From Epithemia pelagica (taxonomy: Eukaryota > Protista > Bacillariophyta), in the NCBI GenBank assembly GCA_946965045.2, contig OX337237.1, forward strand, positions 1,178,001 to 1,242,000: 64,000 nt of DNA, read 5' to 3'. The stretch's first letter is position 1; the number at the start of each line of letters is the position of its first letter. The position numbers were made by a program, and so were the translations under genes. The notes below the pieces were generated by a model, which was given only the letters and a program-made list of their open reading frames with translations, was not told the origin of the DNA and searched no databases. Shown here in pieces: positions 1 to 28,500 of this stretch.

Positions 1-1901
1 AAGGTGGCCGAGAGAGACAGAGCCGGGAGAGGAGCAATACCGCGTTGCTTCAACAAGAGCAAGAACTCTCGTTCCGATGGCAGCAAAAACAAGAGGGAAT
101 GTCCGGCTTTGCCGGCCCGTGCCACACGACCAGCTCGATGGACGTAGTCCGATAGTTCGGCCGGTGGGTCGTATTGAACGGTCCAATCACACTGTTCCAG
201 ATTCAATCCCCGAGCTGCGACATCGGTTGCCAACAAGATAGCAGCCTTATTATTGTTGGTGGTGGTGTTCTTGGATGCGGGTTTCGACACGTCTGGGGAA
301 TGGTATTTTGAGCGTGGATGGTCGGACGATTGTAGAAATTCGTGCAAGACTTGCTGCCGTTGTGCATGCGGTACACGACCATGCAGTTTGTAAATGGAAC
401 AGGCGGATCCAAAAATCCCCCGTTGCGAGTTGGTTTGGGTAGTTGTATTTGTCTTGTTCTTGTTTGTAGTTTTGTTGTTGTTGTTATTATTCGTGTTGTT
501 CTCATCGTCGTCATTCAGATTGGCGACAATACAGTCCATGTGTTGAAAGAGAGCATAATAAAAGTCGACACTGGCACACGTGTCCAAAAAGACCACGACA
601 CGATTTTGTTGTTGGACAACACGTTGGACCAACAAGGCAATGAGTGCCGACAAGCGCCATTTGGCACTCACCGTCATGTGCCATTGGGCCAATTGTCGCG
701 GCGTGGAATCCGCCAATTCGCCGGCTGGCAGGTCGTCGTCGACGTCCTGGTCCTTTTTGTCTGGAGCCGCACCATCATGTGCCGTATCCTCCCGTGCTTG
801 TTTGGAGAGGTTCGAGGAGGCCTCCTGTTTTGGTTGTTGTTGTTGTTGTTGTGGAATATCTGCAGCTGCAGTAGACAGTGTCGACAGGGCGTCCTTGTCG
901 TCGTCCTGTTTGGATCGGATCCAGATCCAGGAATCGGACGAGCTGTTTCCGAGCGCCAAGGTTTCGATGGCCAATTGTTGCACCGACGGAGTCACTGTGG
1001 CCGATACCAAGACCGATCTCCAGGGAATGCTTGTGGTGCGGGTGGATCCTCCTTGATTGGCGAGAATGCGTTGGACAATGTGTTGGACTTGTTCCCCCAA
1101 TCCCATATCCAACAATCGATCCGCTTCGTCCAAGACGAGCCATTCCAAATTGCTCTTTTTCATGTTCTTCTTGTTGGTGTGGTTGGTTTTGAGAGCCAGG
1201 AGCAAGGATTCGGTTTTGCACAAGTGATCCAACAATCGTCCTGGTGTCGCCACGACAATACCCAATCCCTTGCGCAATCGCATCTTTTCTGATTTACGGC
1301 TATTCATGTGGTTTTTATTCTTATTGTCGTGGTTGCCAGCACCACTGCCCAACAAACTTCCGGGAACAATCCAGTGAAAGGTTTGCGCGCAGACACGTTC
1401 GGCCAAGGCTACGGTTTGGGCGGCCAATTCTCGCGTGGGACACAAAATGATACATTTGGTACCCACTGCAGCTCGTGTGGGGGTTGGTGACCCGTCGTCC
1501 TTCGTGGTGGTGGTGGAAGTGGCCATGGCATGAAGAATGGGCAAGAGATAGGCCAAGGTTTTGCCCGATCCCGTTTCGGAATGAATCAAGAGATTCTTGG
1601 CGCGTGTCGTCGTCTGGTCGTTGGCCAAAAAGGCGGGAATGGCCCGTGCTTGAATGGAGGTGGGTTGGTTCAAGTGCAACGTGGTCTGAACCGCCTGGAC
1701 AATCCGGGGATGCAATGGCAAATCGGACCAGGAATGGGCCTGGGAAAACAAGTGGTGGGAATCCTTGGTACGACGAAACGAGGAGGACGACAATGATGAT
1801 GATCCATAGTGTCGATCCAACTCCAAGGGACGAGCATGAAATGCCAATTCCGCTTGGGTCCAGGATGGTTGCTTTGGTGGTGGTTGTTGGGAGGCCGTTG
1901 A

Positions 1902-1939
<38 letters not shown>

Positions 1940-2443
1940 GTTTGGTTTGGTGTTGGAATTCACAGGGTGGTTGTTATTATTTCGTGTTGGTCGATAGTCG
2001 TCGTCGTGGTTGGGAAAGGCTTCCTCCAAGGTTTTGGGGTGTGATCGAATCGGTCGTTGGTGGATTTCGTGTCGTGTGTTGTTGTTGTGGTTGTGGTTCG
2101 CCGTGGCCCTGGGATCGTTCTTGTCATTTTCGTCGTCTTCGTCTTGTTGTTGAGGAGTGGCCTTGTCGTCGTCGTTGTGGCTCTCATCCGACAGACGCTG
2201 TTGTGGTTGTTCTTGCTGTTGCTGTTGCGTTTCTCGTCGTTCCAATTCCAATGCACGACGACGTCTTCGACGATCATACTTGTTGAATGTCTTTTTCTTT
2301 GTCTTCTTGTTGTTGTTCTTTGTCGTCGTCGTTGTCGTCGTCGTCGTGTTGGATGGTGAGGAGGAGGAGGAGGGTTGTGCGACAATGTTCAAGACAAACG
2401 CATCGTCTTCCGCATCCATGGCGGCCTGTTGTTGTTGTGTCAT
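1..2443 (-). pseudogene. DBP7/DDX31-like DEAD-box helicase, copy 1 (frameshifted; 3' end runs off window start)
   Basis: Paralog of 18318-21590. The (GTT)n tract at 1901-1950 is 20 nt longer than in copy 2, shifting the frame (stop at 1670). The other indels I compared are multiples of 3. Could be a repeat sequencing error. Confidence 0.75.
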
Positions 2444-2817
2444 TCGTCGTCTTCTTCTTGTTGTTGTTGTTGTTGTTGTTGCCGTGACGGCTGGAGATGG
2501 GGACAGATCTGATCTGTAGCGGTGGTTGTTGCTGGACGTTTGGCACAACAAAAGAGGGAGACGAGATGAGAGAGTTGTGTGTGCAATGGAGAAAATGTGA
2601 CGAAAACCGAAAAAATGGTTGGAGAGAGACGCAAAACGATTTAAATTTAAATTTCGAAATTGGATGTAGAGGCGGTCTCTCCGGTGTCCGTAAGGTACGT
2701 TGGGGCAGTTGTCAACACAGGATGGAAATCTGGATTCCGGAATCCGGAAGCTGGGGGGGAATTTGTGTATTTCCTTGGGCCTTTTGTAAAATAGAGAGCA
2801 GACAAGTGTTATCAACC

Positions 2818-3731
2818 ATGGGCAATCAAACATCGACGCCTACTACTCCTGCAGAAAAGCACTACCCCAGAATGCCATCCGATATGAAAGCAAGGGAGAC
2901 TTTGTTCAAGCGATCCAGAGCACACAGACCGCCGAAACGATCTTGCTACAAACTGACCCAGAATCTCTCGAAGTAGCCAAACTGTGGACATATCTCGGCA
3001 AACTCTACATGCGCCAAGGTGACTTGGACCAAGCCGTGGTATACTATAAGCGATCCATGGCATTGCTGGAAGAACGGGATCCAGAATCTCCCCTCATGTC
3101 CACTACCTGGCAAAATATGGGTTGCATTTGTACAGAGCAGCATCAGAATGAAGAGGCGCTGGTTTGGTTGGAAAAGGCGCTGAAACTACAGCAAATGAAT
3201 GAACCCGACTCTCTGAATCTGGCCTATACTCACCACAATATTGCTACTGTTTTGGAACGGTACCCACAACGGCAGGAAGAAATGATCCATCACATACTAA
3301 AAGCCATTGAAATCAAACAAGCAAAGGCACCAGACTCGGAATCGCTCGCCACGAGCTATATCATATTTGGAACTTACTGCGAAGCTCACATGCATATCCG
3401 TATTGCTCGAGAAGCCAAGGACATTGCTGATTGTCTCATCCCGTCAAGTAAACCACTCTATGTTGACGTTTATCAATGCTTAGCCCTCGGATACCACAGA
3501 GAGGGCAACACACAAGATTTAGACAAGGCGATTCACTTTCTCAAGAAAGCACAGGCATTGGAACTTTCCATGTCACCCACATCGTTGAAGTGTGCTGAAA
3601 TTCACACAAACTTGGCCGTGATCCTGGAGGACGCCGGAAGACTGGAAGAAGCTCGCGAAGCACGTGCAACTGCTGTAAGCATACAACTGGAAAAGGCACC
3701 TTCTCTACTTGAAGTTGGCAACAAGAACTGA
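2818..3731 (+). CDS. TPR-repeat protein, copy 1 (probable N-myristoylated start MGNQTS; one-base frameshift near 2855)
   Basis: TPR-like repeats (AKLWTYLGKLYMRQGDLDQAVVYYKRS; AEIHTNLAVILEDAGRLEEA). TPR frame is open from 2790 with no ATG until 3009. ATG 2818 joins it if the A4 run at 2855-2858 were A5. Confidence 0.75.
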
Positions 3732-3834
3732 TTTCAGAGGCATGATTGACCAATTTGATCCACTGCTCTGGGCTTTTGTCATTGCGCTGTAGGTGATCAC
3801 CGTCGACGACGTCGTAATCGCCATTGTCATAATG

Positions 3835-6461
3835 TTAGAAAACAAAGCCAGCATCAACTAAGGACTGCTGATCGGCATCAATATCGTGTCGAATAGCCGT
3901 CATTAGCGATTCATGGATAAGTCCTTTCAATTCCTCCATTTTGCTACGCGTTGCGCTCCAACAACGAAGGGGCGGATCATCTGGATCTGAACTCGATGCC
4001 TTTTTTTTGGGTTCAAATGCGGTTTTCAGTTTTTCCAAGAAAGCAGACCGAATGCTATCCTGTTGTTTGTCATGGGTTGTCACAGTCGTCTTTTTATCAA
4101 TCTGAACGATTCCGATGTACTGCGGCAACGACTGCAAAGTATTGTCCCAATAGGTCTTATCATTTGACTGCATTTTCCCTTTGGGACCGTTCTGGGGGGA
4201 AGGAACAGAATTGGGGTCCGATTTGCTTGGTGTTTTTTTGCGCTTGTGCTCCCGCTTTAGCTCGTTTTCTACATTTGGGTAGGTAAGACGATTGAATTGC
4301 ATTGCCTGCAATTTTACAAATCCAAAGTAGGACAGAGATTCCTTTGGTTGCAGAAACCATAGCTGTGGTGTCGCACCATCGTCGACCCCCTTGCATGTTT
4401 TCACAAACTCAAGAATCATCCATTGCTTCACAGGGTGGTTTTTCTCAGCAACTGTCAGTTGAAGAGCCGCAATGGAAAACATTTCTCTCCTTTTGATCAT
4501 GATGATGGCGTCAATCGCAGCAAAAGTCTCACTTGTGGCTTTCGCAAACACAGTAAACTCTTCCGTACTATGTGCATCCAACTTGGCCTTTGCCTTTTCC
4601 GAGAAATCCTGCATTGTCGTAAACTCGATGACTTCAATTTTGGATGCCGATTCCTGAAGCAGCACTTGAACAGAGGGCTTCATGTGATCCACGGGAAGCT
4701 CTGAACCGACGATGGTTATGTGCGCTTGATCGTTCCGCATATTCCTTGTTAGCAGAGGCTCCCAAATCCAGCCACCAACGCTGCGTGCCTTCGGCTGTGC
4801 AAGCAGGTCTTCCATTAGCTTCTGAAGTTTATCATCCGAACGGGACTCCTCCTTTTCCAGCAGCGATCGCCCGATGTATGGCGAGGGGATCTGGAGCTTG
4901 AACTTATTTCGGAATTTGTCTGTAGGGATCATGTGTCCAACAAGGCCGGGATACAGTTTTTGCCCAACCACAGCGGAATTCCCCTCATTTGTTGGAGAAG
5001 AATCGTCCAAGACAGAAAGATGATTTACTAGCTTTTCCACTCCGTATATCGAAATAGCTCCATCCACCAGCTCCTGCGCCTTCTCTGGATTTTGAAGGCA
5101 AAGGCGTGGGACACCTCCCACATAATAGAATGCGTCTTCCGCTTCGGTAACTGCTTCAGGGCTCTTGTTGGCTGCCATTTCTATTACCTCACGCTTGCTT
5201 GCTGAATCAATGTAACAAAAATTACCTTTAGTATCACTCCAATTTTGCTGTTGCCGAAGCCTGCTCCATCGTTCTTTGTTCGCTGAGCTTACAATGAGAA
5301 GGAAGCCGGGGGGGAAACTTCGAACACCTCCTCGGCTGAGATCCACAATGTGAAGGGTCTTATATTTGCTTCTCGGTTGGCCAGCCGCAATTTTGTTGCC
5401 GCTCCACGTGTAATGGACTTCCCAACCAAAAAGCTTTGCCATGAATAAACCAATGATAGCACCAAGAATTGACTTGCCGGTTCCCTGGACTCCAGTTAGT
5501 ACCATTGTGCTCTTTTTCCGGTCATCGTCTTGCTTTGCATTTGCGTACTCTTGATGAGCTTTCTCAAAGAACGCAATCGTTGAGCAAAGAATGTAGGAAT
5601 AACAGTGACGCCAATAAACTGAGCGGATTTCATAGTCAAACCATTCCATGCGCTTCACTTGGATGAACCGCTTCTCATTGACTTTCAAAAGCGAAATATC
5701 TTGATCAAAGAATACCTGCATCGCATTGATATCGTTATCCACAGTAGTCCTCTCTGAGGAGGGGCGTCGCTAGCCGCAGAGGGTAGAATGAGGATGTTGT
5801 GTGACAAAAAACAACGAGACACAGAAAATCCATCTAGAACTACCAAAAGATACGCATACAAACTCACCTGCTGGATTTAATGAAAGGATGTGCAAGAGTA
5901 ATGAAAGATAAGGTCGGCAATCAAAGGGAAATTGATGGAAAAGACGGTTGGTTGTGACGCATGGAACAAATTATGAGTGAGTTTCAATGGCTTTTCAAAT
6001 TGGGAACAAAGAAAACAAAACATAGTTGTTGCTGTGGCATTGTAGCTGAATACCAGCCGGCCCAGATAATTGATGAAATAGGCAAAATGACAAGAATCGC
6101 AAAATCGAATACAGATACACAATCACAAATTCACACTCACTGCTGCCATTGCCGGACCCAGCGTGTACACATTCAGACTTACCTGTGGAGTATCACCGTC
6201 ACCGCGTTGCTGCGAGATTCCAAAATCGCGAAGAAGCTGCCCTCGTTCCGCTATTGAGAGCCTGTTGTATTCGGCCTTGGTAGTAATGTTGGATAACCAT
6301 AAACGAAATTCTGGCTGGGCGAGGCTCCAATAATCAGGCGCATGGCGTGCACCACCTCGTCCTTGCCCGCGACCCATCCCGCTCCTTCGCCCTCGCCCTC
6401 CTCCTTTTACTGGACTAGAATCTCTTCTGTCACCCTCCGCTTTGTCGTCTCTGTCTGCCAT
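3835..6461 (-). CDS. Crinkler/RHS-type P-loop NTPase + PD-(D/E)xK-like nuclease, copy 1; exons 6461-6183 (alternative donor 6140), 5870-5868, 5769-3835
   Basis: Walker A GVQGTGKS, GGVPR motif, GGWIWE, nuclease-like AIDA..LQLT..H. Phase-0 donors GTAAGT (6182) and GTGAGT (6140, 5867). Acceptor TAG before RRPSSERTTVDND. Confidence 0.8.
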
Positions 6462-7150
6462 GGCGCCACTTACAGAAAGTTGAGGTTGCCGTGTTGCGTT
6501 TTTTGGGTTTTGCGTTTTTCAAATTAGTACGTTACTGTCTACGGTAAAGTGGGACTCCTAAGCGGGGAGTTCGCAAAGGAGTGGGGTTGTGTCCGTGGCA
6601 GTGATGAACTGTGCCATTGGAGCCGGGGAGTAGATCGGAGTGACTGGTGCAAAACATGGTGTTTTGTCTTCGAGGTTGGACACGACGAAAGGGTGAGTCT
6701 TGTGTCTCGTGAATGCCGTGAGGTTGATCACGCGCGACCGAAAGCTCACCCCGGCTTCTTGGGGGTAGGATATAATATTATGTCCGAACCGAGGACGAGG
6801 ATACCATTTTGGGGGTTTACGGTTTACGAGTAACCTTAGAACAAACGAATCTTTTCCTTGATAAGTATCACAACGACAAAGATCGTGTCACTTGCGGCGT
6901 ACCAAGACCTCGGTAAACGTACCATACCCGCTTCTTGCCATTACAATAGCAGCATGTCAGAAGTCTCTAGTCCCGCTACCGTAGCGCCTGTGAAGCTCAA
7001 AGACAGCGACTGTGGATATTCGTTCGTCGAGTTTCCCGAGGATGTCATTTTCATGGAACGTGTGAGTTCCAACAGCTCGTTCCGACCCCATGTTGGCTTT
7101 GTTCCAGTACAGCGAGTCATCAATGGAACCGAAGAGACACATTTGTACGA
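6169..7150. other. 982-bp cassette unique to copy 1, replacing the 958-bp segment 25316-26273 of copy 2
   Basis: No similarity to copy 2 between the breakpoints. Homology resumes at AGTTGAAACG (7151/26274). Contains the alternative Crinkler header exon and its upstream region. Confidence 0.9.
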
Positions 7151-10100
7151 AGTTGAAACGACCACCATGCCAGGAACAAAACCGCCGCCAGGCGAGACCT
7201 CACCGAGGAACAACAGTCCAACCGACAACGCGGACAACAGCAACGAAACCGAGAACAACACTGCCAACCAAGACAACACCCAAGACGGCTGGGTCTTGCT
7301 CCGCCCGAAGACTCGTACAGCAAACCCATACGCTTTTTCCCTGACGAGAAACGAACCTGCTCCAGCCCACCTGGTCTATGCACCACGAATCCAAACAGGC
7401 TGAAGCCCGACGCCCACCAGTCACAGCGAACTCCCTCCATGACATTCTTCAAGCGGCCCTGAACCTTCACAAAAAAAGGCAAGGCGAACATCCCCTGGCA
7501 ATCGCCATTCACCATATTGTCTTTGTGGAGACGAAAAAACCAAAGAAGAAACAAGGCAACCACACGAGTATCTACCTCGTCAGCTTCAAACCGGCGCAAT
7601 CCAACGAGCAGTTCGATCTCGAACTTTTCTGGGAACAGGCTATCCGTTTCATTGTCCAAAAATGGCACCAGCACACCCTCAGTGACTTCCAAGAAGACGG
7701 TAACGGTAACGAAATCGTCCTCCGCCCCAATCAAGCGCTCAACCAGCTCAACAAGGCTACGGCAACAACACACACACGAGCAAGTCAACTCACCCTCTAC
7801 TTGCCGGCGTGCAATCACCCGAATGCAAAGGCTATGGGTATCGTGGGCGGAATCCCCGCCGTTGCCCAAACGCGGACAAATCAACCTCCAAGAAGCCTTC
7901 CACAAGCAGTTGCTCCCTTTTCTGGATGACACGCTTCTTCGCGACAGCTAGGAGTTCAAGAACCATGTGGGGTTCAGAGACGGTACATTCACCAGGAAGA
8001 TGGAAAGCGGCACCCCTGGAGTAGCACCAGTGATTCAAATTGCAACATCATCACCAACGGTCTTCCAAAAGATCCTTCATTCAGCAACACTGTTTGCCAC
8101 CGCCACACCTGATAGAGTCCAAGACTTCACTTGGTACGGGAGCAAGTTTCAGATCATGCCTTTCCCCCACAACGACGATGACGCCACAAGGACGCAAAAC
8201 CTAATCGATGTTCGTAACATCGACCAATATTTCCGCATGAAATGTGTGTTCATCCACATCCGGGCCGTCCACCTGCCACCGGAACTGGAACATTGGAACA
8301 AGCTATACGAGCTTCCAACCTTTGAAGGCATTTTTCCTACATTTGTAGGACACTACGCCGAGCCAGTGGGTTACGACCTCTACCTACAAAATGCACCAGA
8401 TACCTTCACTCTGGATGCCGAGAAACTCCGCCACTACCCGGGTTTCCCGATTGAACTCCTCCCACCACCGGTTGCCGCGGCACCACAACAACTACAGCCA
8501 CAACAAAATGGCAATGTCCCAGTCAGGCAACAAAACGTTAGAAGCCATGCACAACGTTTTCACCGCCTGGCCGAACGTATCACACGGCGTCATACGGCTC
8601 AAACAACAACAACCACGGACCAACCATCTCGGCCAACGCCCACAGCGGTCTCTCCAGAGCGAAGCCCACGGAAACGAGCGGCAGTGGAACAATCTCCCAC
8701 CCAACCGATGGAAACCGAAGTCCACTCCACGCCAACAAGCCCTACAGGCAACACAACGCCTTTGGGCAACCATTTTACAGCACTCCAACAGACCGAACAT
8801 CACGATTCCGATAGTTCGGCGACAATGGACGAAAAAGACTTCGAACAAACAACAAATACTCCGGCTGAGCTTGTTGCCCTGTTGCAACAATATCACATTA
8901 CAACGGCAACACACTCACAGAGTACCTACGAGGAAATGCTCACTTTGGCGACACACGTCTACAAACAAGACAGCGCTAAAACGGCAATGCTCTTGGAGCA
9001 TCTCCAGCCTATTCGGTCCTTTCGGGAAGAGGACAAACAAGATGCCTGGGACTACGCCACGGAACTTCTCAACAGTGTAATGGCAAGGACGGATCGCAAC
9101 TCACCCGACTCTAAGAGGCCCCCACAGCGGGGCCATGGCGCTTAGAAGTCCCATGAGTCATAGATCCTTCCCCCGCCACTGCCCCGTTCCGAATCGCCCG
9201 TGGACCCTAGCAACACCCCAACCCAACCACCCCCGACGACACCTATGTAACCACCTCAAAAACGACCATCCGAGTATCCCTACGAACGACTACTTAACCA
9301 CCGCCTTTTGCACACAAACAAACATCTACCCGTGCCGACAATGCAACACCCCAGACCGCATCTACCACGACAACGCCCACCTCAAAGCCCATACAAACGA
9401 CAAACATTCTCGGGAGAAAACAAATCTACAATTAGTAACGACAACACTATGTAATCTACCTTGTGAGTTTCACTCGGCCTGGTCCCATTCTCTAGAATCT
9501 CTATACAACTGGGACCCCACCCCACCACCGTTCAGGGCAACTATATGGCATGCCCTTTCCCCCCAAGCCAAAACAGAATACCACAACATTTTAGGCATGG
9601 TAACCACGTGGACGTGTTACAATTCTTTCTGAATCGTAGGGACATCAATGCTCGTTAGAGCAGACAATCAGGTAGTCACCAACCGATACAAACCTCTCCA
9701 CGGGTAAGAGAGGAAAGCAAGTCGTAGTCTATCAAAAGGATAGTCGGGACACAAAAGAGGATGTGATAAATGGTGATATTGTTAGATTGTGAGCTTTAGG
9801 ACTACGGTGTGTGTTTTGATGTGCAGGTCTGGCCAGGGTGCATGACTGATATATTCATGGCGCTGACAGGACTGGTCTGGTTGGAGTAGACATGGATATT
9901 GTGTATTGGAAGTATATGCACTTGTATATCATATACTAATGCCAACAGCTCTTGCTTTGTTGTGATATAGCTAGTTTTCTTGGCGCGTTGCCGTTTGCAT
10001 TCTTCAATTTGTGGGAATAGAGATATGGTCTCGCGTGATCGTGATTCGTGCTTCGGTTACTTAGGCCGTTGGGCTAAGTCGTGGAGGTGCGTACTCGGAT

Positions 10101-13100
10101 ATTGATTGCGCGCGCTTGAGAATATTGGGCGCGCACGTGTTGGGTCATAATTAATATCCGATCGGTCGCTCATAACACGTGCATTGCGAGCATGCCTTGG
10201 CCGAATTTAAAGGTTTGCGAGCATGCCGTCATTCTTTTCTCACTTTTACGAAAATGTCATCGGATGCCATAAAATACTAGCATCAGTCGATGAGTTGTAG
10301 ATTCCACCACCACCTAGTTGTTGGTGAGAATTCTGCCAGGACGATCAAAGCATCACAACCAATTACGGCCAAGCACCACAAAGACCAACAAACCAGCCCA
10401 CCCCTTAGAGACGCAACCCCGTTCTGGAAGCTTTTGTTAGTCCTGGAACCGCTGCTTTTAGCACCCTTTAACAACGAAGACTTTGATTCCCCACACAAAG
10501 CCTTACGGGCACGCATTGGCCAGTTCAAACAAGGCAGAATCCAGGAACTCCAACTCCAGACACAACCAACACCACGATCGACCCAGCAAAAACCATCCAA
10601 CGTGCGTCAAAAGCCGCAGAGTTAGATAACTTTTCGACGGCTTTCAAACGGTTAACCGAATCATTGCCACAAGCAAAACTTACGAAACCCACCATCAAAG
10701 CAATTAAAGCCAAATTGTTTTCACCACCGGTGCCATCGCCAACAATCAGTTTACGACGGTCCGCCCGAAACCAGGACACCCAAACAGACCCCCAACAAGT
10801 TCCCGTCCAAATCGGACCGAGCGACCTTGTCCAGACTCTTCACCGTCTCAAACGCGGTACGGCCGCCGGACCCTTTGCATCGTGCATTGATGCAATAGCA
10901 TCTTTTGGCCTCCACCATCGGACCAGCAACAACAAGTCAACAAGACCCCAAATCAAGAAATTATGCACCCTCATCAACCTCATACTGGCCGGGAAGATCC
11001 CTCCTGCAATCCAACCCCATATCTCTGCATGCTATTTCCTTGCTCTCCACAAGGATCCCCAGGACTCCTCCAATTTCTGCCCCATAGGCATTGGCACTGC
11101 CTTACGACGAGTGGCAGCATCGGCAGCTCTACATGCCACAGCACCCCAACTAACCTCTTACCTCCCAGTTCTCGGACAATTCGGCATTCAAACGCCTGGC
11201 GGCATAGACTTCGCTATACAAACGACAGTCTGCCAACTCCACAAATACGTGGAAACCAACGTCACTCCAACCCGGGCCTTGCTCCTGTTGGATATCACCA
11301 ACATCCAACAACATGTTCAATGCAACATCAAGAGCACACTGCCGAACCCTCCTCCAAGCCAACCCAGCCACCAACGCCTTGATCCCTCTCTTCGACATGT
11401 TGCACGGCCAGCCCGTGTCCCAATGGTACTATGACAAAACTCGTCATCCACAACACTTTGCCCAGCGGGAAGGCTTCCCACAAGGGTGCCCTTTGAGTCC
11501 ACTTTTTGCATGCATGGTTCTAGGGGACCTGGTTACCAAACTAAAGAACGAGCTGTTAGAACGGGCAAAAACAAGAATGGCAACAGGTATCACCGGCGAC
11601 GACAACAGAGGCCTCGAAGCCCACACCACGTCCATCATGGACTTTACCATGGTTCATCCGCCGGTTTCAAGAACTCGGCGGTCCCATGGGCATTCATCTC
11701 AGTTGCACCAAGACCAAGATACTGACATCCACCACCGGAGAATCACCCATAACGACCCTTGCACCACAAGCAGCGGCAGCACTCACAGAGGCTCTTGGTC
11801 TCTTGGCTCCCTCCAACCCCACTTCGGCCGAACTCACCGTGGGAACCAGATTTCTCGGATACCCGCTCGGACAGCCACAATTTGCCCAACAATTCATCAA
11901 GGACACGATTGCCGAGCTCAAAGCGAATACGGACGCAATATTGCAACTCCCCAACGTCCAAACGCAAGCCATCATGTACCGCCTCTCCATAGCGAATTCC
12001 ATCAACCACTTGTTGTGTTCGGACATCCTCACCTCTCCGTCGCCCGACTCTGACGACTCCTATTGGATCAGTGATACCACCAAGCAACTCGACAAACTCC
12101 ACAAATATTTCATCAAAAACCTTTTGCAGTCCACCAACGACATTCCCGACTATGCCCTCCACATAGCCACCATCCCAGACAGATTTGGGGGTCTTGGTAT
12201 TTCCAGTCCTCATACAACAGCCAAGGCAGCATTTGTTGGATCTACGGTTCGATCAATCCAACTCTGCAACGAACAACACGGCGTCATCCTCAACGACTAC
12301 CACAAACGAATCTTTCAAGACTGGGAAACCAGCCCCCTCCCATCGCTTCCAGCTTGCACCAATGCGATATAAATCTTGACAGCCCGCTCCGAGAAACCCC
12401 CCAATTGCAACGAACACTCACCGACCAAACATTACAGCGTCACGGCTTTGACCGGTTGATTGTTGCAACTCCAGACCACCTCAAGCCGAGTCTCCCCGCG
12501 GCATTAACGCCGTACATCAGCAAGGCCCTTCATCAACCCAGACGCTCTGCGCCCTTCCATGTCCCCGATGCCATTTACCGTACCACGGTTATGCGAAAAT
12601 TACGACTCCCCTTACTGGCCACAGCGGCACACCAAGTCTGCCTTTGCCAAAAAGACCACCCCCTAGACCCATACGGCGATCACTTTTTCTGTTGCTCCAA
12701 AAGTCCAAAGACGCATGCATCCAACACCGTAGGATGCGCTGTTTACTGTCCTGCAAGAAATGGCCCCCCATTGCAAACACGTGAGATCTCAGGATGATAT
12801 CCACATCGAGCCGCTCAATCTCTTACCGGCACACCCTTCCAACATACGGCCGGCCAATGTCGGCATCCAACTCAACCCGGCAGCCAACAAACACGGACTG
12901 AAATACATTGCAATCGATGTAACCATCCCTCCTCCACCTGTCCCACATCCAGCTTCCTCCACTGACCTGTCCGATCTTCAAAACTTGGCTGACTACGCCA
13001 GTAGGACACATCAGCTGGCTGCCCGTGGAAAGCTCATCAAGGACCCCATCGCAGCATCCCTCATGAACCAAGACAAGATGATCCTTGTACCCTCCACCGT

Positions 13101-13505
13101 CGATCACCTCGGTGGACTCGGATCCTTTGCCACCCAGTTGCTTTTTGGGAAACCCGCCTACCCCGGTCCCCATACACCGCCTCAATGGGACGACCACTTT
13201 TTCGGCATGTGTTCATCTCGCGCGTCACCCAAGCCAGAGGCATTTGAACTTTTCCAAGCCTTTCAACACTGTCCGACGAACTTGACGGCTGTCCCTTCTG
13301 ATTTCGAACCCTTGTCCTCCAAAACCTTAGACCCCCATTCCCAGCCCACGGCCTTTCTCCCCATTTCTACGTTCTCCAAAATTGCTCTCGGCCACGCCAT
13401 TCTCACTGCCCTGGCCACCCACATCCACCAACAACAGGCCCTCCATGATGCCCACTCGATGCAAAAACGACAACACCGATATCGATCTTCTTTATATGCA
13501 TCTTT
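7151..13505 (+). mobile_element. CRE-clade non-LTR retrotransposon, copy 1 (truncated at both ends, decayed, interrupted by solo LTR)
   Basis: Near-identical to 26274-31905. C2H2 fingers, RT motifs (GQFG..PGG, QGCPLSP, FLG, GGLG) and RLE zinc knuckle. Private ~29-nt net deletion at ~11640 removes part of the IMDD catalytic motif. Confidence 0.9.
9615..10338. mobile_element. Solo LTR (724 bp)
   Basis: Absent from copy 2. Begins TG(TTAC), ends (TGC)CA, flanked by a perfect 5-bp duplication GGACG (9610-9614 and 10339-10343). No coding capacity. Confidence 0.85.
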
Positions 13506-13998
13506 ATTTCGTGCCAGGCCAAAGTCGAGGCCAAGCCAACCACGATATTCGTCTGTCTGCCACACCAAACTTTGGCCCAGGCCACTGGCCTGGCAATAGT
13601 ATCACGTCATTATTTTCAGAATAATTACTTATTATTTCTCCCAGGCCAACGGTCTGACCCTCTTCCAATGCAGTCTGTCCTTACCACCAAAGACATAAGA
13701 TACATACGGCGATAGGTGCATGCATACTCTCAGTCGCCAAAGCATACCGTCCTCAATGGACGGCATTCCAGGCGTTCATCGCCCTGATACTACTGTACAA
13801 ATCCATTCGTAGATGCCTCGGGATGCAGCGTTTACCCATCTTCCACTCTTTTTTGTTGCATGGCATTGGCCATCATTGGCCATCCTATTTTATGTCCAAA
13901 TCATTAGGAACGATCATCATAGGCATCCACATCTTCTTTTACGCATAGGCTAAGATAGAAACAGTCTCAGAATTTCGTTAAAGAGGCAACTACAAAAC

Positions 13999-16900
13999 AT
14001 GTCCACCCCTCCTTCTCGTGCCCGTTCTTCTCGTCGTCGTCGTCCTCATCGTGAGGAGGAAGATGACTCCCTTGTCAGCAGTCCTGAGCGATCTCCCCAG
14101 CGTACTCCACGCAATGGATCTACAACAACGCCTACTCCTACATCGCCTGCTCCTACAACCCCTACGGCTAACGCTACAGCAACAGAGATGGAGGAGGAAT
14201 CTCCCATCGGTATGGACGACGAAGAGATGGAAACGATGATGGAATCATTGACAAAAACCGTAAGCGATTCTCTCAAAAACGAAAATACGAGAAAAGTGTA
14301 CGAATACAAAATCAAGGAGTATTTGAGTTTTTGCCGAATTCACCGTGCCTACCTGCCTGCTGGATCGCAGTTTCTCGTTGATGAACCCGGTACTTTCTAT
14401 TTTATTTTTTACAACGTGTTTCGCGAAAAAACAAAAGGAAAACGAAAAAAACCTGGAGATTTCGATTACGCAGACTTCAAGCATGTTATCAGAACATACA
14501 AGCCTATCATCAATCTTCTGAAACACTCTCCCGGTGCCAAAATCCCTCCAGGCAATCTTGATCCCACTAACCCCCTCTCCGAATCTACAATCAATACGTA
14601 CAGGAGTGCTCTCAAACACCAATTGGACACTCAGGGGTCGAAGAAAGACGGAGAACGAGTATGGAGCGATGTGGACTCTCCACGTGTCCGATCTCTGATA
14701 TATATAGCGAAGGTACGTTTAACCAGTGAATTGGTGACTGTCTGTTGACTGTTGACCCTGTCTGTGCATATCATCTCTCATAACTATTATTTCTACAGTC
14801 ACGGACTACCCGTGTTAAGAAACGTAACTACAAGGAGAAAGTGAATGAGACATCTCCCTTCGAGCATTTTGAAACGAGCATTTTGAAATGATTAACAAGA
14901 TCGAGTATATGTTTTGGTCTCGCGGCTGCAGGTATGACGGAAAGTCGAATACCAACAAGACTGTCTTTGCTTCTTTACGACACCGCTTTTCATTCTTGAT
15001 GAACTACGCCTCTATACTACGGAGCGAGAGTCTGCATCTAGCGGAATTGTCCGACCTAAGAGTTTTTGCGATTAACCGTCCTGGCGATATCGACAAGATG
15101 CCGATTGTACTCATGGAGTGCCAAACGGGAAAGACCATAAAAGCCGGTGCACCATCACAGTTTGCTCGTGCAACACGTCATCGAAACGTAATGGCCTGTC
15201 CCATTGGAGCAATGGCTATGTATTTGTTTTTTCGGTTCCATATGACCGAGGAATTCTCTGGAACATTCAACCAACCTGATTTACGGAACAACTCTTCTTG
15301 GTTTGACTTCAAGATTCTCACAAGTGCAGATGGTTCACCTACAGAATCAGTGAAGGTTTCGAATTTTCGTACAGAAATCGAGAATATCTTCAATCAACTC
15401 GGTATTGTGTCGGACTACACTACCCACTGGTGCAGGCACATTGCACCGACTCATTGCAAATTCAAAGAGATAAGCCCTGAGCTTATCAAACAGTTAGGTA
15501 AGTGTTCGCTGGTACTACTCTGCTCATATGACAGCCAAATGTATCTCACTGGTTTATATTTTTGTACACAGGTAACTGGGATAGAGATACCCAAGAGACA
15601 CGTTATTCATCTAAAATACCTATTGCTGCGATCCGTTGTATGGCTGGCTTCGAACAGTCTGATGGATACTGGCTACCCAGAGACAGACTGACCGTACCAC
15701 CTTCACTGTTACAAAAAATATGGCCCTGGCTGGAACAGAAGGAGGAATGGGTTTCATCAGACTTAACAGATGCCGAAATAGAGCAGAACACGAGTGCCAG
15801 GAAGAAACACCCTACCGCATATTGTTTCCTACATTTCCTCCGTTTTCTCCGTGATGTCCTTATACAAGATGTGGCTGCCATTATGTCGATTCTCGAACAC
15901 CCTGACCCTACCGACTCGCAAGAGTCAGAAATCCGTTTGACACACATTCTTTTTACTGATTTTCCCATATTCCAAGATCCTGAGTTTCTGGCCTATAAAG
16001 ACAAAATGCACAAGTTACTTTCAAAACATAACGAAACTTCCCAAGATCCCAAGATACGTGCTATTGACCAGTGTCTTCCCGGTGTGAATCAACGATTTGA
16101 ACATCTCAATGTGGAAACTGAAATTTTGAAGGAACACATGTACCAGATTTTCTTTGAAATCGACAATGTTAAGGAAAGTATGACGAAGAGTACAGAAGCT
16201 ATTATCAACCACTTGAAACAAATGGAAATTCGGATGAACATGGAAACTGATCGGAAAATCATGCGTTTCTCCGAGGCTATATCATCATCTTTCCAATCCC
16301 AGATCGGAACAACTGTCGAAGCCATATCCGAAGCGACACAACATGCAGCTCGAATCACCTTCTCCACGAATGAAAACGAAGGCAACGATGTCACAGATAC
16401 TGACCCCACCAATGAAATCTCTTCACCAGCCCGACAACCAGTGCCCCCTCCACCACCTTCACCACAAGATGCATTTGCAGCCGCCTTCCCACCACCTTCA
16501 CCACAAGATGCATTTGCAGCCGCCTTCCCATGTACTCTTCCGTCACCCAATACCGTACACCCTTCCCCCGAGTCGGACACTCCAACTAATGACCCCCCGA
16601 ATGTTTCTTCGAACAATCCCTCTCCGTCGGAAGACAATATCGAAAATTTCCTCGGTATGAAACTCCCGTGCACCCATGTTGCAAGACACCGACTAACGAT
16701 GAAGCGTTTGTACTTTGAGTTTTTTGGTCTTGGCGAACGACAGGATCAACCAGTAAAACTTGGATTCCATGGTCTTGACCTGAAATTCCAATTCCATTGG
16801 CGGAAACCATATCAACAAAGCGACAAGACATTGTACTCTCGTGTCCAGACTATCGTACGGGGCATAGCTACTCATCATGGCGTTGAGTTCGGTTCGTGGT

Positions 16901-19950: not shown

Positions 19951-20004
<54 letters not shown>

Positions 20005-21590: not shown

Positions 21591-24500
21591 TCGTCGTCTT
21601 CTTCTTGTTGTTGTTGTTGTTGTTGTTGCCGTGACGGCTGGAGATGGGGACAGATCTGATCTGTAGCGGTGGTTGTTGCTGGACGTTTGGCACAACAAAA
21701 GAGGGAGACGAGATGAGAGAGTTGTGTGTGCAATGGAGAAAATGTGACGAAAACCGAAAAAATGGTTGGAGAGAGACGCAAAACGATTTAAATTTAAATT
21801 TCGAAATTGGATGTAGAGGCGGTCTCTCCGGTGTCCGTAAGGTACGTTGGGGCAGTTGTCAACACAGGATGGAAATCTGGATTCCGGAATCCGGAAGCTG
21901 GGGGGGAATTTGTGTATTTCCTTGGGCCTTTTGTAAAATAGAGAGCAGACAAGTGTTATCAACCATGGGCAATCAAACATCGACGCCTACTACTCCTGCA
22001 GAAAAGCACTACCCCAGAATGCCATCCGATATGAAAGCAAGGGAGACTTTGTTCAAGCGATCAAGAGCACACAGACCGCCGAAACGATCTTGCTACAAAC
22101 TGACCCAGAATCTCTCGAAGTAGCCAAACTGTGGACATATCTCGGCAAACTCTACATGCGCCAAGGTGACTTGGACCAAGCCGTGGTATACTATAAGCGA
22201 TCCATGGCATTGCTGGAAGAACGGGATCCAGAATCTCCCCTCATGTCCACTACCTGGCAAAATATGGGTTGCATTTGTACAGAGCAGCATCAGAATGAAG
22301 AGGCGCTGGTTTGGTTGGAAAAGGCGCTGAAACTACAGCAAATGAATGAACCCGACTCTCTGAATCTGGCCTATACTCACCACAATATTGCTACTGTTTT
22401 GGAACGGTACCCACAACGGCAGGAAGAAATGATCCATCACATACTAAAAGCCATTGAAATCAAACAAGCAAAGGCACCAGACTCGGAATCGCTCGCCACG
22501 AGCTATATCATATTTGGAACTTACTGCGAAGCTCACATGCATATCCGTATTGCTCGAGAAGCCTAGGACATTGCTGATTGTCTCATCCCGTCAAGTAAAC
22601 CACTCTATGTTGACGTTTATCAATGCTTAGCCCTCGGATACCACAGAGAGGGCAACACACAAGATTTAGACAAGGCGATTCACTTTCTCAAGAAAGCACA
22701 GGCATTGGAACTTTCCATGTCACCCACATCGTTGAAGTGTGCTGAAATCCACACAAACTTGGCCGTGATCCTGGAGGACGCCGGAAGACTGGAAGAAGCT
22801 CGCGAAGCACGTGCAACTGCTGTAAGCATACAACTGGAAAAGGCACCTTCTCTACTTGAAGTTGGCAACAAGAACTGATTTCAGAGGCATGATTGACCAA
22901 TTTGATCCACTGCTCTGGGCTTTTGTCATTGCGCTGTAGGTGATCACCGTCGACGACGTCGTAATCGCCATTGTCATAATGTTAGAAAACAAAGCCAGCA
23001 TCAACTAAGGACTGCTGATCGGCATCAATATCGTGTCGAATAGCCGTCATTAGCGATTCATGGATAAGTCCTTTCAATTCCTCCATTTTGCTACGCGTTG
23101 CGCTCCAACAACGAAGGGGCGGATCATCTGGATCTGAACTCGATGCCTTTTTTTTGGGTTCAAATGCGGTTTTCAGTTTTTCCAAGAAAGCAGACCGAAT
23201 GCTATCCTGTTGTTTGTCATGGGTTGTCACAGTCGTCTTTTTATCAATCTGAACGATTCCGATGTACTGCGGCAACGACTGCAAAGTATTGTCCCAATAG
23301 GTCTTATCACTTGACTGCATTTTCCCTTTGGGACCGTTCTGGGGGGAAGGAACAGAATTGGGGTCCGATTTGCTTGGTGTTTTTTTGCGCTTGTGCTCCC
23401 GCTTTAGCTCGTTTTCTACATTTGGGTAGGTAAGACGATTGAATTGCATTGCCTGCAATTTTACAAATCCAAAGTAGGACAGAGATTCCTTTGGTTGCAG
23501 AAACCATAGCTGTGGTGTCGCACCATCGTCGACCGCCTTGCATGTTTTCACAAACTCAAGAATCATCCATTGCTTCACAGGGTGGTTTTTCTCAGCAACT
23601 GTCAGTTGAAGAGCCGCAATGGAAAACATTTCTCTCCTTTTGATCATGATGATGGCGTTAATCGCAGCAAAAGTCTCACTTGTGGCTTTCGCAAACACAG
23701 TAAACTCTTCCGTACTATGTGCATCCAACTTGGCCTTTGCCTTTTCCGAGAAATCCTGCATTGTCGTAAACTCGATGACTTCAATTTTGGATGCCGATTC
23801 CTGAAGCAGCACTTGAACAGAGGGCTTCATGTGATCCACGGGAAGCTCTGAACCGACGATGGTTATGTGCGCTTGATCGTTCCGCATATTCCTTGTTAGC
23901 AGAGGCTCCCAAATCCAGCCACCAACGCTGCGTGCCTTCGGCTGTGCAAGCAGGTCTTCCATTAGCTTCTGAAGTTTATCATCCGAACGGGACTCCTCCT
24001 TTTCCAGCAGCGATCGCCCGATGTATGGCGAGGGGATCTGGAGCTTGAACTTATTTCGGAATTTGTCTGTAGGGATCATGTGTCCAACAAGGCCGGGATA
24101 CAGTTTTTGCCCAACCACAGCGGAATTCCCCTCATTTGTTGGAGAAGAATCGTCCAAGACAGAAAGATGATTTACTAGCTTTTCCACTCCGTATATCGAA
24201 ATAGCTCCATCCACCAGCTCCTGCGCCTTCTCTGGATTTTGAAGGCAAAGGCGTGGGACACCTCCCACATAATAGAATGCGTCTTCCGCTTCGGTAACTG
24301 CTTCAGGGCTCTTGTTGGCTGCCATTTCTATTACCTCACGCTTGCTTGCTGAATCAATGTAACAAAAATTACCTTTAGTATCACTCCAATTTTGCTGTTG
24401 CCGAAGCCTGCTCCATCGTTCTTTGTTCGCTGAGCTTACAATGAGAAGGAAGCCGGGGGGGAAACTTCGAACACCTCCTCGGCTGAGATCCACAATGTGA

Positions 24501-25315
24501 AGGGTCTTATATTTGCTTCTCGGTTGGCCAGCCGCAATTTTGTTGCCGCTCCACGTGTAATGGACTTCCCAACCAAAAAGCTTTGCCATGAATAAACCAA
24601 TGATAGCACCAAGAATTGACTTGCCGGTTCCCTGGACTCCAGTTAGTACCATTGTGCTCTTTTTCCGGTCATCGTCTTGCTTTGCATTTGCGTACTCTTG
24701 ATGAGCTTTCTCAAAGAACGCAATCGTTGAGCAAAGAATGTAGGAATAACAGTGACGCCAATAAACTGAGCGGATTTCATAGTCAAACCATTCCATGCGC
24801 TTCACTTGGATGAACCGCTTCTCATTGACTTTCAAAAGCGAAATATCTTGATCAAAGAATACCTGCATCGCATTGATATCGTTATCCACAGTAGTCCTCT
24901 CTGAGGAGGGGCGTCGCTAGCCGCAGAGGGTAGAATGAGGATGTTGTGTGACAAAAAACAACGAGACACAGAAAATCCATCTAGAACTACCAAAAGATAC
25001 GCATACAAACTCACCTGCTGGATTTAATGAAAGGATGTGCAAGAGTAATGAAAGATAAGGTCGGCAATCAAAGGGAAATTGATGGAAAAGACGGTTGGTT
25101 GTGACGCATGGAACAAATTATGAGTGAGTTTCAATGGCTTTTCAAATTGGGAACAAAGAAAACAAAACATAGTTGTTGCTGTGGCATTGTAGCTGAATAC
25201 CAGCCGGCCCAGATAATTGATGAAATAGGCAAAATGACAAGAATCGCAAAATCGAATACAGATACACAATCACAAATTCACACTCACTGCTGCCATTGCC
25301 GGACCCAGCGTGTAC
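19129..25315. repeat. Segmental duplication arm A2, paralog of 1-6168
   Basis: Direct alignment with window start. Confidence 0.97.
21965..22878 (+). pseudogene. TPR-repeat protein, copy 2 (premature TAG at 22564-22566 plus the shared A4 frameshift)
   Basis: AAG in copy 1 (3417-3419) is TAG here; otherwise nearly identical. Confidence 0.85.
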
Positions 25316-25470
25316 GTGCGGCCAGGGACGAGGGATCCAAAGTCAACTATTCCTGTGCCTTCGCTATCTCGTAGGAACTTTACGCCCTCAACTTTTAAAT
25401 AGTCCCTATATCCCTGCTGACTGGAGACGCTCAACTTCTCGCCATTGACAACAATTTGTATGGGCATCAT
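22982..25470 (-). CDS. Crinkler/RHS-type NTPase + nuclease, copy 2; exons 25470-25288, 25017-25015, 24916-22982
   Basis: Same body as copy 1, with AINA instead of AIDA (23659). 61-codon header exon MMPIQ..RTYTLGPAMAA ends at a GTGAGT donor. All junctions are phase 0. Confidence 0.8.
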
Positions 25471-25556
25471 GGTTTGTGGTGCTTAAATTGCTTTTACTGA
25501 AAAGCTCATCGCTTTATCATGGGCACTTTTTGGTGCGGGCACGGAAATTGGGACTC

Positions 25557-28500
25557 TCCCCGACTTTAGTGGGGGGATAAGGCAGGGGAGGGGGAAAGGA
25601 AGGGGAAAGGAAAGGGGAGGGAAATATCACAAATCACAACAGGGCAACGACAACGACGATAACGACGATAACGGCAATAACTTTCCCAACGGACACACCT
25701 ACTGCCTCTACAATCCCCTCCCTGCCCAAACCAACCATGGTCCCCCGTCCCCCCGGCGACGCGCTTCCGGGCAGCACCGCCGTGGCAGAAAGTCCGCAAG
25801 AAATCTGCCACGACTGACTCGCAGTGCTACGCGTCTAGCCGCATCCTTTCCGGTTTGACCGCCGAGCGACCCAACTTTCCGCCAATCCCCCAAACCCAAA
25901 CTGCAACCACAATGACCATCCTTCCTTTACAACGAAAAAAATCCAACGGAAAAGGTCTCATTGCAAAAAAAGCAGCCGTACCAGCGACCATGGCGTCGCG
26001 ATCTCTCATCAACGTACCCGGACAACCGATGTCAAACCCAACGAACCACCCATACTGCCCCCAGACAGAACAACAACCACTGGTGTCAGAAGCTTTGCAA
26101 GACAGCCATGACACCAACATAGGACCTACAGCCAAACCTACTACGGCCACGACGTCAACGACACAGCGCTATCACGAACGAGAAACCGTAACCACACCGG
26201 CCGCCAGGAGAGCGCATAAAACAGAAAGCGAACAAACAATCACTTCCCTTTCACCAAAATAACCCAGTCCATCAGTTGAAACGACCACCATGCCAGGAAC
26301 AAAACCGCCGCCAGGCGAGACCTCACCGAGGAACGACAGTCCAACCGACAACGCGGACAACAGCAACGAAACCGAGAACAACACTGCCAACCAAGACAAC
26401 ACCCAAGACGGCTGGGTCTTGCTCCGCCCGAAGACTCGTACAGCAAATCCATACGCTTTTTCCCCGACGAGAAACAAACCTGCTCCAGCCCACCTGGTCT
26501 ATGCCAACGCCTATATGCACCACGAATCCAAACAGGCTGAAGCCCGACGCCCACCAGTCACAGCGAACTCCCTCCATGACATTCTTCAAGCGGCCCTGAA
26601 CCTTCACAAACAAAGGCAAGGCAAACATCCCCTGGCAATCGCCATTCACCATATTGTCTTTGTGGAGACGAAAAAACCAAAGAAGAAACAAGGCAACCAC
26701 ACGAGTATCTACCTCGTCAGCTTCAAACCGGCGCAATCCAACGAGCAGTTCGATCTCGAACTTTTCTGGGAACAGGCTATCCGTTTCATTGTCCAAAAGT
26801 GGCACCAGCACACCCTCAGTGACTTCCAAGAAGACGGTAACGGTGACGAAATCGTCCTCCGCCCCAATCAAGTGCTCAACCAGCTCAACAAGGCTACGGC
26901 AACAACACACACGCGAGCAAGTCAACTCACCCTCTACTTGCCGGCGTGCAATCACCCGAATGCAAAGGCTATGGGTTTCGTGGGCGGAATCCCCGCCGTT
27001 GCCCAAACGCGGACAAATCAACCTCCAAGAAGCACGCTTTGCGACAGCTACGAGTTCAAGAACCATGTGGGGTTCAGAGACGGTACATTCACCGGGAAGA
27101 TGGAAAACGGCACCCCTGGAGTAGCACCAGTGATTCAAATTGCAACATCATCACCAACGGTCTTCCAAAAGATCCTTCATTCAGCAACACTGTTTGCCAC
27201 CGCCACACCTGATCGAGTCCAAGACTTCACTTGGTACGGGAGCGAGTTTCAGATCATGCCTTTCCCCCACAACGACGATGACGCCACAAGGACGCAAAAC
27301 CTAATCGATGTTCGTAACATCGACCAATATTTCTGCATGAAATGTGTGTTCATCCACATCCGGGCCGTCCACCCGCCACCGGAACTGGAACATTGGAACA
27401 AGCTATACGAGCTTCCAACCTTTGAAGGCATTTTTCCTACATTTGTAGGACACTACGCCGAGCCAGTGGGTTACGACCTCTACCTACAAAATGCACCAGA
27501 TACCTTCACTCTGGATGCCGAGAAACTCCGCCACTACCCGGGTTTCCCGATTGAACTCCTCCCACCACCTGTTGCCGCGGCACCACAACAACTACAGCCA
27601 CAACAAAATGGCAATGTCCCCGTCAGGCAACAAAACGTTAGAAGCCATGCACAACGTTTTCACCGCCTGGCCGAACGTATCACACGGCGCCATACGGCTC
27701 AAACAACAACAGCCACGGACCAACCATCTCGGCCAACGCCCACAGCGGTCTCTCCAGAGCAAAGCCCACGGAAACGAGCGGCAGTGGAACAATCTCCCAC
27801 CCAACCGATGGAAACCGAAGTCCACTCCACGCCAACAAGCCCTACAGGCAACACAACGCCTTCGGGCAACCGTTTTACAGCACTCCAACAGACCGAACAT
27901 CACGATTCCGATAGTTCGGCGACGATGGACGAAAAAGACTTTGAACAAACAACAAATACTCCGGCTGAGCTCGTTGCCCTGTTGCAACAATATCACATTA
28001 CAACGGCAACACACTCACAGAGTACCTACGAGGAAATGCTCACTTTGGCGACACACGTCTACAAACAAGACAGCGCTAAAACGGCAACGCTCTTGGAGCA
28101 TCTCCAGCCTATTCGGTCCTTTCGGGAAGAGGACAAACAAGATGCCTGGGACTACGCCACAGAACTTCTCAACAGTGTAATGGCAAGGACGGATCGCAAC
28201 TCACCCGACTCTAAGAGGCCCCCACAGCGGGGCCATGGCGCTTAGAAGTCCCATGAGTCATAGATCCTTCCCCCGCCACTGCCCCGTTCCGAATTGCCCG
28301 TGGACCCTAGCAACACCCCAACCCAACCACCCCCGACGACACCTATGTAACCACCTCAAAAACGACCATCCGAGTATCCCTACGAACGACTACTTAACCA
28401 CCGCCTTTTGCACACAAACAAACATCTACCCGTGCCGACAATGCAACACCCCAGATCGCATCTACCACGACAACGCCCACCTCAAAGCCCATACAAACGA

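Follow-up and report, generated by a model that had tools for sequence, protein, structure and literature searches.

Probable overwriting of the promoter and header exon of a Crinkler/RHS-type gene by ectopic DNA in the diatom Epithemia pelagica

We propose an account of how one of two copies of a Crinkler/RHS-type (CR-type) gene in the diatom Epithemia pelagica came to carry a new N-terminal header. Both copies lie in the window analysed here, i.e., a stretch of 64,000 nucleotides (nt) at positions 1178001-1242000 of contig OX337237.1 (called C10 below, other contigs being numbered in the same manner) in an assembly of 60.5 Mb and 23 contigs. Based on our account, the promoter and most of the header exon of copy 1 were overwritten by DNA resembling a locus on contig C18, and headers have been swapped between bodies throughout the gene family at a joint formed by an intron. 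We give the account as a whole a probability of about 0.7. The modular reading in the preliminary description of this DNA, in which two otherwise identical bodies came to differ in promoter and header through an exchange, finds support at the level of the DNA and extends to the whole family.

In a self-BLAST of the window, positions 1-13505 are repeated at 19129-31905, with the homology continuing 1.1 kb further leftward, the two copies constituting a segmental duplication of about 14 kb with a spacer of 4.5 kb (13506-18029) between them. The sole block without homology is formed by 982 bp in copy 1 (6169-7150) facing 958 bp in copy 2 (25316-26273), and these are the same two stretches that had been described before as exchanged for each other. 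The features of the two copies are listed in Table 1.

Table 1. Coordinates of the main features of copy 1 and copy 2 in the window.
Feature	Position	Strand	Remarks
TPR-repeat open reading frame, convergent with body	2943..3731	+	inside the near-identical tract; Pfam TPR_12, E 6.6e-23
Copy 1 body exon	3835..5769	-	644 codons + stop; AAA+/STAND-like P-loop NTPase, then putative C-terminal restriction-endonuclease-like domain; D420 and N536 kept
Copy 1 intron	5770..6140	-	371 nt; GTGAGT donor 6140-6135; phase-0 acceptor AG 5771-5770
Surviving header-2 tail, copy 1	6141..6168	-	last 9 codons YTLGPAMAA; identical to 25288-25315; includes GT junction microhomology 6167-6168
Start of the incoming header's intron	6169..6182	-	first 14 nt from GTAAGT, a second phase-0 donor; from alignment to C18 locus L022
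Header 1 exon	6183..6461	-	93 codons, RG-rich stretch then putative helical motif; 98.6% identical to C18
Header 1 5' untranslated region and proximal promoter	6462..6519	-	C18-derived
Dispersed repeat, 142-146 bp	6520..6661	.	about 58 bp upstream of the header-1 ATG; gap in the C18 donor alignment
Divergent promoter / intergenic region	6662..6857	.	C18-derived; 98.1% identical to L022
Fragment of header 1's C18 neighbour open reading frame	6858..7151	+	first 98 codons; ends at right junction (1-nt microhomology)
Copy 2 body exon	22982..24916	-	N at 420 (codon with 23659) and S at 536 (codon with 23310), both family-invariant columns
Copy 2 intron	24917..25287	-	identical to copy 1 intron
Header 2 exon	25288..25470	-	61 codons, predicted small ubiquitin-like (beta-grasp) domain; ancestral header of the locus
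Ancestral 958-bp segment lost from copy 1	25316..26273	.	52 header codons + promoter; occurs once in the genome, besides a 62-bp match

In both copies the gene is on the minus strand, where a 644-codon open frame follows directly after a TAG that is usable as a phase-0 acceptor. The header exon of copy 2 (header 2) starts with the ATG at 25470 and has 61 codons, with a GTGAGT donor following after 25288. The header exon of copy 1 (header 1) starts with the ATG at 6461 and has 93 codons up to a GTAAGT donor (6182-6177), and its frame is open for 14 codons more, to the old GTGAGT donor at 6140, giving 107 codons. Thus the statement that copy 1 retains two phase-0 donors, both in frame, is correct, and so is the placing of the left breakpoint 14 nt into the incoming intron, where the C18 match ends and is followed by the 2-nt GT microhomology. 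By contrast, the acceptor at 5870 that had been proposed for both donors cannot be kept, because it enters the body frame at codon position 2 and the TAG at 5772-5770, which is in that frame, intervenes; splicing in frame and in phase 0 calls for the AG at 5771-5770, with the body exon beginning at 5769. Acceptor 5870 is workable only if the three nucleotides CAG form a micro-exon, for which a second GTGAGT at 5867 would be the donor. This part of the intron (5872-5862) thus reads as an acceptor-like AG, a CAG and a second family-like donor (ag/CAG/GTGAGT), a motif that may be the scar of an earlier junction, resembling the tandem donors of copy 1. Note also that nearly all relatives share Met 17 of the body exon (5719-5721), shortly ahead of a conserved FF motif, and that many of them start with it, so header-less isoforms that start at this internal Met are possible.

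The origin of the copy 1 segment can be read from a whole-genome search and alignment, in which about 834 bp of it match C18 at 98.3%: positions 6169-6519 match C18:1192884-1193236 with 5 mismatches in 351, and positions 6662-7150 match the adjoining C18 sequence with 9 mismatches in 483 and a 6-bp indel. At this locus of C18 (L022) header 1 serves another gene as its first exon; the GTAAGT is the donor of an intron of 111 nt whose acceptor is phase 0, and beyond it lies an open reading frame (ORF) of 567 codons, the C-terminus of which is kinase-like by Pfam (Kdo, which exceeds its cut-off, and also APH and Pkinase). The divergent neighbour ORF has 212 codons at C18, only the first 98 of which are present in the window. 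The C18 homology ends at the duplicon boundaries, the shared nucleotides being two (GT) at the left and one at the right. The interval between the two matching parts is taken up by a dispersed repeat, of which the genome has about 40 copies (75-99% identity); these share a constant end and differ at the other, and no terminal inverted repeats were seen. The repeat landed in the new promoter after the swap.

Because copy 1 keeps nine leftover header-2 codons, the neighbour ORF is complete only at C18 and the C18 homology ends at the duplicon boundaries, the direction is settled by the sequence: copy 1 is the recipient, which once had header 2 and was then overwritten by ectopic DNA. The same points make the reversed direction, in which header 1 would be ancestral and copy 2 would have acquired header 2, very improbable: the leftover codons belong to a conserved part of the header-2 domain, the ORF fragment of the patch is whole at C18 alone, and the homology between patch and C18 stops exactly at both boundaries. 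The reversed direction can appeal to a body relative in another organism (P0004), which joins a header-1-like module to this type of body, and to header 2 being single-copy here at the DNA level, so that no donor of it can be named. The repeat-rich and duplicated nature of the region could also raise the suspicion that the patch is an assembly artefact, i.e., a chimeric join of C18 and C10 in repeated DNA. This we regard as scarcely credible, since the patch is shorter than 1 kb with duplicon sequence on both sides, since 14 substitutions, a 6-bp indel and an insertion of 142-146 bp set it apart from C18, and since the assembly consists of just 23 contigs. As the overlaps at the junctions are very short, we infer that the DNA was joined by end-joining or template-switch repair and not by homologous exchange. 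The earlier picture of a cassette swap does not fit junctions that are illegitimate, with only 1-2 nt shared. A retro-copy origin of the patch is ruled out by the promoter, the intron sequence and the antisense ORF fragment that it contains.

The divergence between the copies bears on the timing. It is about 3.5% over 1-2000 and about 1.1% over 7151-13505, and it is 0.19% (8 differences in 4168 nt) over 2001-6168 as compared with 21148-25315. This 4.2-kb tract of low divergence, about 10 times less diverged than the rest of the duplicon, comprises the TPR ORF, the body and the intron, with zero differences between the copies in the intron. Since the near-identity extends to intron and intergenic DNA, which is not explicable by selection, the tract is best read as the result of gene conversion, which probably halted at the heterologous patch; the left junction itself might have been shaped by this conversion event. 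The near-identity of the bodies was described correctly, including the three residue differences: 3 of 1938 nt differ between the body exons, all three changing the amino acid. It had also been taken as a sign that the exchange is recent, and this part does not hold, because the identity arises from the conversion tract and is uninformative on the age of the swap. Moreover, the patch is 1.7% diverged from its C18 donor and gained its repeat afterwards, which likewise does not bear out the term recent.

Header exchange is seen in the wider gene family as well. In a survey of 20 loci, at least 5 header types and at least 7 body types occur in mixed combinations; based on predicted splicing, about 20 loci have a header exon that runs in phase 0 up to the conserved donor, and in-frame acceptors are present for both bodies examined, those of C10 and C18. 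Six pairs of bodies that are 98.0-99.8% identical over 1.7-3.8 kb carry different headers, and the homology in these pairs starts at -28, -6, -4, +18, +64/+143 and +73/+87 nt from the 5' splice site, positions of which some may be shifted by BLAST toward the conserved intron start. The C18 'donor' gene itself belongs to one of the swapped pairs.

The first 85 nt or so of the intron (6056-6140 in copy 1; 25203-25287 in copy 2) are a family-conserved element with a nearly invariant core of about 30 nt. The element is present on at least 26 loci, many of which stand in arrays on C11, C3 and C6. At the DNA level the 5' end of the intron is 81-92% identical among paralogs as compared with 69-81% for the header exons, and the intron is the better kept of the two in 15 of 15 pairs. 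A known or structured RNA as an explanation of the element is ruled out, there being no match in Rfam, an RNAalifold energy of -1.5 kcal/mol and a single-sequence z-score of 0.3.

A genome search found header 1 on bodies other than that of C10, as the modular reading would have it, and in total it is present at 93-99% identity in four contexts: C18, copy 1 on C10, C17 and C7. At C18 it stands on the kinase-like body. At C17 its first 84 codons are fused in frame to another header type, before a body with a putative restriction-endonuclease (REase) domain and a kinase domain. On C7 (L023/L031, C7:3176000-3195999) there is an array of tandem 3428-bp units, in three copies of which header 1 is inserted in frame into a gene for a nucleoside triphosphatase (NTPase); the insertion consists of header 1, its 5' untranslated region, 16 nt of its intron and an 81-nt intron fragment, and the ORF has 957 codons with it as compared with 859 in the first unit, which lacks it. 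In our reading, the longer N-terminal region of this C7 NTPase gene may resemble the ubiquitin-like (Ubl) header of Crinklers. The differences of header 1 among the four contexts are nearly all non-synonymous, which with about 10 events is not significant for selection.

Three further loci carry relatives of the C10 body. L025/L030 (C3:4033000-4051999) is a scrambled third copy, 99% identical, in which a header-2-like exon (47% amino-acid identity) is followed by 84 codons of a REase-kinase body and then by an intron of the C10 type; exactly at the acceptor, 1673 bp with an ORF that is weakly trypsin-like are inserted, and the body has a 64-bp deletion. L026 (C1:1063820-1065700) and L027 (C7:2488699-2490615) are older paralogs of the body with 70% and 50% amino-acid identity, respectively; in both, a different N-terminal region is continuous with the body in one intronless ORF, and each has one in-frame TAA.

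We now consider the proteins, the exons having been searched and folded singly. Header 2, folded together with nine paralogous exons, gives a model with a predicted local distance difference test score (pLDDT) of 90.4 and a beta-grasp topology in the order beta-beta-alpha-beta...beta, and its best 50 matches in the PDB are almost all ubiquitin-like or related beta-grasp proteins (ubiquitin, SUMO, NEDD8, ISG15, doublecortin), with template-modelling (TM) scores of 0.66-0.69 and a best E of only 0.026, a weak value as expected for 61 residues. Header 2 is thus predicted to be a small ubiquitin-like fold. Header-2-like exons are present at 14 loci in the genome. The putative helical motif of header 1 aligns with the extreme N-termini of two body relatives in other organisms, P0004 (pairwise E 2e-5) and P0006 (7e-4), the latter having also a header-2-like segment (E 1e-4) after the header-1-like motif. 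As N-termini like both headers thus occur on body relatives elsewhere, headers 1 and 2, which are unrelated to each other, both belong to the natural N-terminal repertoire of the body family. Many body relatives are without any header. For the long form of header 1 (156 amino acids, from C17) the ESM Atlas gave no usable feature match.

For the body, a word search gave 21 relatives, none of them annotated. A Pfam search with the body, either header and 20 relatives was without match, including to Crinkler (PF20147) and RHSP (PF07999), and the header of the C1 paralog reached E 0.075, under the cut-off. Structure is more informative. The AlphaFold2 model made from the relatives' alignment has pLDDT 82; a Walker A motif is nearly invariant among the relatives; residues from about 10 to 310 match NTPases of the AAA+/STAND class (RuvB, NLRP3, ClpA, CED-4) in Foldseek; and the top match in VIA-align is TnsC (Z 8.4, residues 26-293), tied with other AAA+/STAND proteins. 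In the shape search of the ESM Atlas, residues 10-560 match a chytrid cluster whose name refers to the N-terminal domain of Crinklers (TM 0.57/0.64), and the same search of the body also gave trypanosome RHS proteins (PF07999; TM 0.55) and a basidiomycete cluster called 'Crinkler family'. In the comparison by features, residues 340-500 reach 0.95 both with RHSP-bearing clusters and with an oomycete cluster that has 1726 members. The body is, as judged from its predicted shape, of the Crinkler/RHS type, and the claim of this type made before is borne out by the structural match. That the C-terminal domain has an REase fold is carried over from the Crinkler/RHS match and is supported only indirectly: against the PDB the body had no significant sequence-profile match, and structure searches with the whole model, which were dominated by the NTPase, gave no REase match. 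D420, an invariant residue, is at the start of a strand in the model.

The state of the two copies is of importance for the rival that has to be taken most seriously, in which the DNA event is real and copy 1 is a dying duplicate: the patch would be filler DNA, the frame would be open by chance, and the chimera would be unexpressed or functionless. We consider this unlikely, though with real weight behind it. With the paralogs on C3, C1 and C7 as reference, it is copy 2 that has departed from the ancestral residues, with D replaced by N at position 420 and N by S at 536, two columns that do not vary in 21 sequences, and copy 1, derived at position 461, has the consensus residue at both. Both of the two changes in the copy 2 body fall on the 35 invariant columns out of 644, for which the chance is about 0.003, the test being post hoc. 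Moreover, the TPR ORF is intact in copy 1 and has an in-frame TAG at 22564-22566 in copy 2. It is thus the supposedly dying copy that keeps D420, N536 and the TPR ORF. The header-1 ORF is also intact, header 1 was captured in frame at C7 and C17 too, and N-termini resembling it are native on this type of body in other organisms.

Nevertheless, several points weigh against our account, some of which are those on which a dying duplicate would draw. The surroundings of copy 1 are decaying: the helicase and the long right-arm ORF, both intact in copy 2, are broken in it, a solo long terminal repeat (LTR) is inserted, and a dispersed repeat sits in its new promoter. The junctions are illegitimate, and an in-frame junction has a chance of one in three. 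No header-body spliced transcript or protein of this species was found in the protein collection, which has only a header-less call of 628 amino acids. The C10 junction lies in an exon with microhomology only, so it is not at the intron joint of the family. C18 is itself a recent chimera, its body being 99.6% identical to a copy on C11, and thus the original home of header 1 is not fixed by C18. Finally, the REase fold and the nuclease activity have indirect, model-based support only.

With these points weighed, we prefer the account in which copy 1 is a recipient with a new header in frame. The course of events is as follows. The ancestral gene consisted of a ubiquitin-like header exon, a phase-0 intron and a body exon for an NTPase with its C-terminal domain, located in the duplication of about 14 kb. 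In copy 1, 958 bp containing the promoter and 52 of the 61 header codons were replaced by about 834 bp from a C18-like locus, the captured piece comprising a truncated neighbour ORF, a divergent promoter, the complete header 1 exon and 14 nt of its intron. This ectopic DNA would have been captured through end-joining or template-switch repair rather than homologous exchange. The product is in frame via either of the two phase-0 donors, and the dispersed repeat entered the new promoter later. Gene conversion would then keep the 4.2-kb tract near-identical, ending at the heterology. In the family at large, the conserved intron would be the usual joint for recombination of header and body. The header may set the localisation or the choice of partner of an intracellular NTPase-regulated nuclease acting in conflict or defence; that a header swap amounts to the retargeting of an effector is unproven.

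We note the following on the setting of the gene. The host had been taken to be an alga, which is right: it is a diatom, as its silicon-transporter genes (PF03842, E about 1e-226), at least 11 of them full-length, indicate. Copy 1 carries 724 bp more than copy 2 at 9615-10338; this is a solo LTR found in copy 1 only, with at least 40 copies in the genome, often paired about 5.4 kb apart, and a 5-nt overlap at the insertion site. A DEAD-box helicase of SPB4 type is intact in copy 2 (18318-21980, 1220 codons) and broken in copy 1 (1-2833), and a second DEAD-box helicase is at 32087-34195. The right arm at 26290-32002 contains a degenerate element resembling a reverse transcriptase (RVT_1, E 4.6e-5, under the cut-off), and its 651-codon ORF, the 5' part of which is not multi-copy, is intact in copy 2 only. 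The right junction as the end of a multi-copy transposon is ruled out, 26100-27300 giving only the two C10 copies and one weak match. In the spacer, the ORF at 13999-14748 resembles the N-terminus of a Crypton-type tyrosine recombinase.

It is useful to compare the diatom genes with known systems. In classical exon shuffling, exons of domain size move between introns of the same phase, with breakpoints in or beside the intron. The diatom modules are likewise bounded by phase-0 introns (by predicted splicing), occur in mixed combinations and have breakpoints at -28 to +143 nt. By contrast, the shuffling in the diatom is recent, with bodies 98-99.8% identical, and within one family; the joint is a 5' segment of the intron that is better conserved than the exons; and the C10 event is an illegitimate join 28 nt inside an exon. 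Bacterial Rhs and other polymorphic toxins replace their tips and fungal NOD-like receptors (NLRs) reshuffle their domains, where it is the toxin or sensor end that is swapped. These are, like the diatom genes, conflict-type proteins that swap one end on a constant core, and the NTPase of the diatom is STAND/AAA+-like; the difference is that the diatom exchanges the N-terminal header and that no immunity gene is evident.

The closest comparison is with the CR proteins themselves, a class defined by Zhang et al. 2016 and taken here through a review (PMC5289972). According to that review, the modularity of header and body and the occurrence in free-living eukaryotes are already known, and in CR proteins and the diatom genes alike the enzymatic C-terminus is preceded by a header that is ubiquitin-like or helical. 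The likeness extends to the bodies, in that both the NTPase-REase and the REase-kinase types appear to be present in the diatom genome, with the indirect support for the REase stated above, and in that the shape of the diatom body matches Crinkler and RHS clusters. The diatom gene differs in having no Pfam match to Crinkler (PF20147) or RHSP, in its header, which is a much shorter beta-grasp domain, in having header and body as separate exons joined by a conserved phase-0 intron, and in showing no sign of secretion. The CRN effectors of Phytophthora recombine at the HVLVVVP motif, as the same review states (PMC5289972). There too N- and C-termini reassort at a fixed joint, with one C-terminus on various N-termini, the difference being that in oomycetes the joint is a motif within the coding sequence of a pathogen's secreted effector, whereas in the photosynthetic diatom it is the 5' end of an intron; both the LxLFLAK and the HVLVVVP motif are absent from the two header translations. 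In addition, AACRNL is a Crinkler-like gene amplifying in free-living eukaryotes (PMC12957317). It is likewise outside pathogens, transposon-associated and gaining in copy number; it differs in its ADP-ribosyltransferase body, its occurrence in teleosts and its degenerate header, and the abstract describes no header exchange (PMC12957317). The new elements in the diatom are that header and body are packaged as exons around an intron, that the joint is a conserved intron, and that recent swaps have junctions which can be read.

A further-reaching view can also be put forward, which we consider improbable. The intron element of about 85 nt could be a dedicated joint, i.e., a hotspot of recombination or breakage or a protein-bound signal, that reassorts header and body cassettes in a repertoire of intracellular NTPase-nuclease/kinase proteins at a high rate, a eukaryotic form of combinatorial diversification for defence or for conflict between self and non-self; the copy with the new header would then be the catalytically intact one, with the old-header copy being disabled.

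Finally, we note what the finding means for this family. The exchange of headers in Crinkler/RHS proteins has so far been inferred from old and diverged families of pathogens, while the case in a free-living diatom is recent enough for the donor, the recipient, both junctions and the remnant of the old header to be read. In the family, header and body stand on exons of their own, the loci have a phase-0 intron in common, and the breakpoints gather around the splice site, a pattern that provides a testable mechanism for the building of such repertoires. The two copies and their relatives offer a natural system for asking what headers do, and the finding bears on how new genes are created in diatom genomes.

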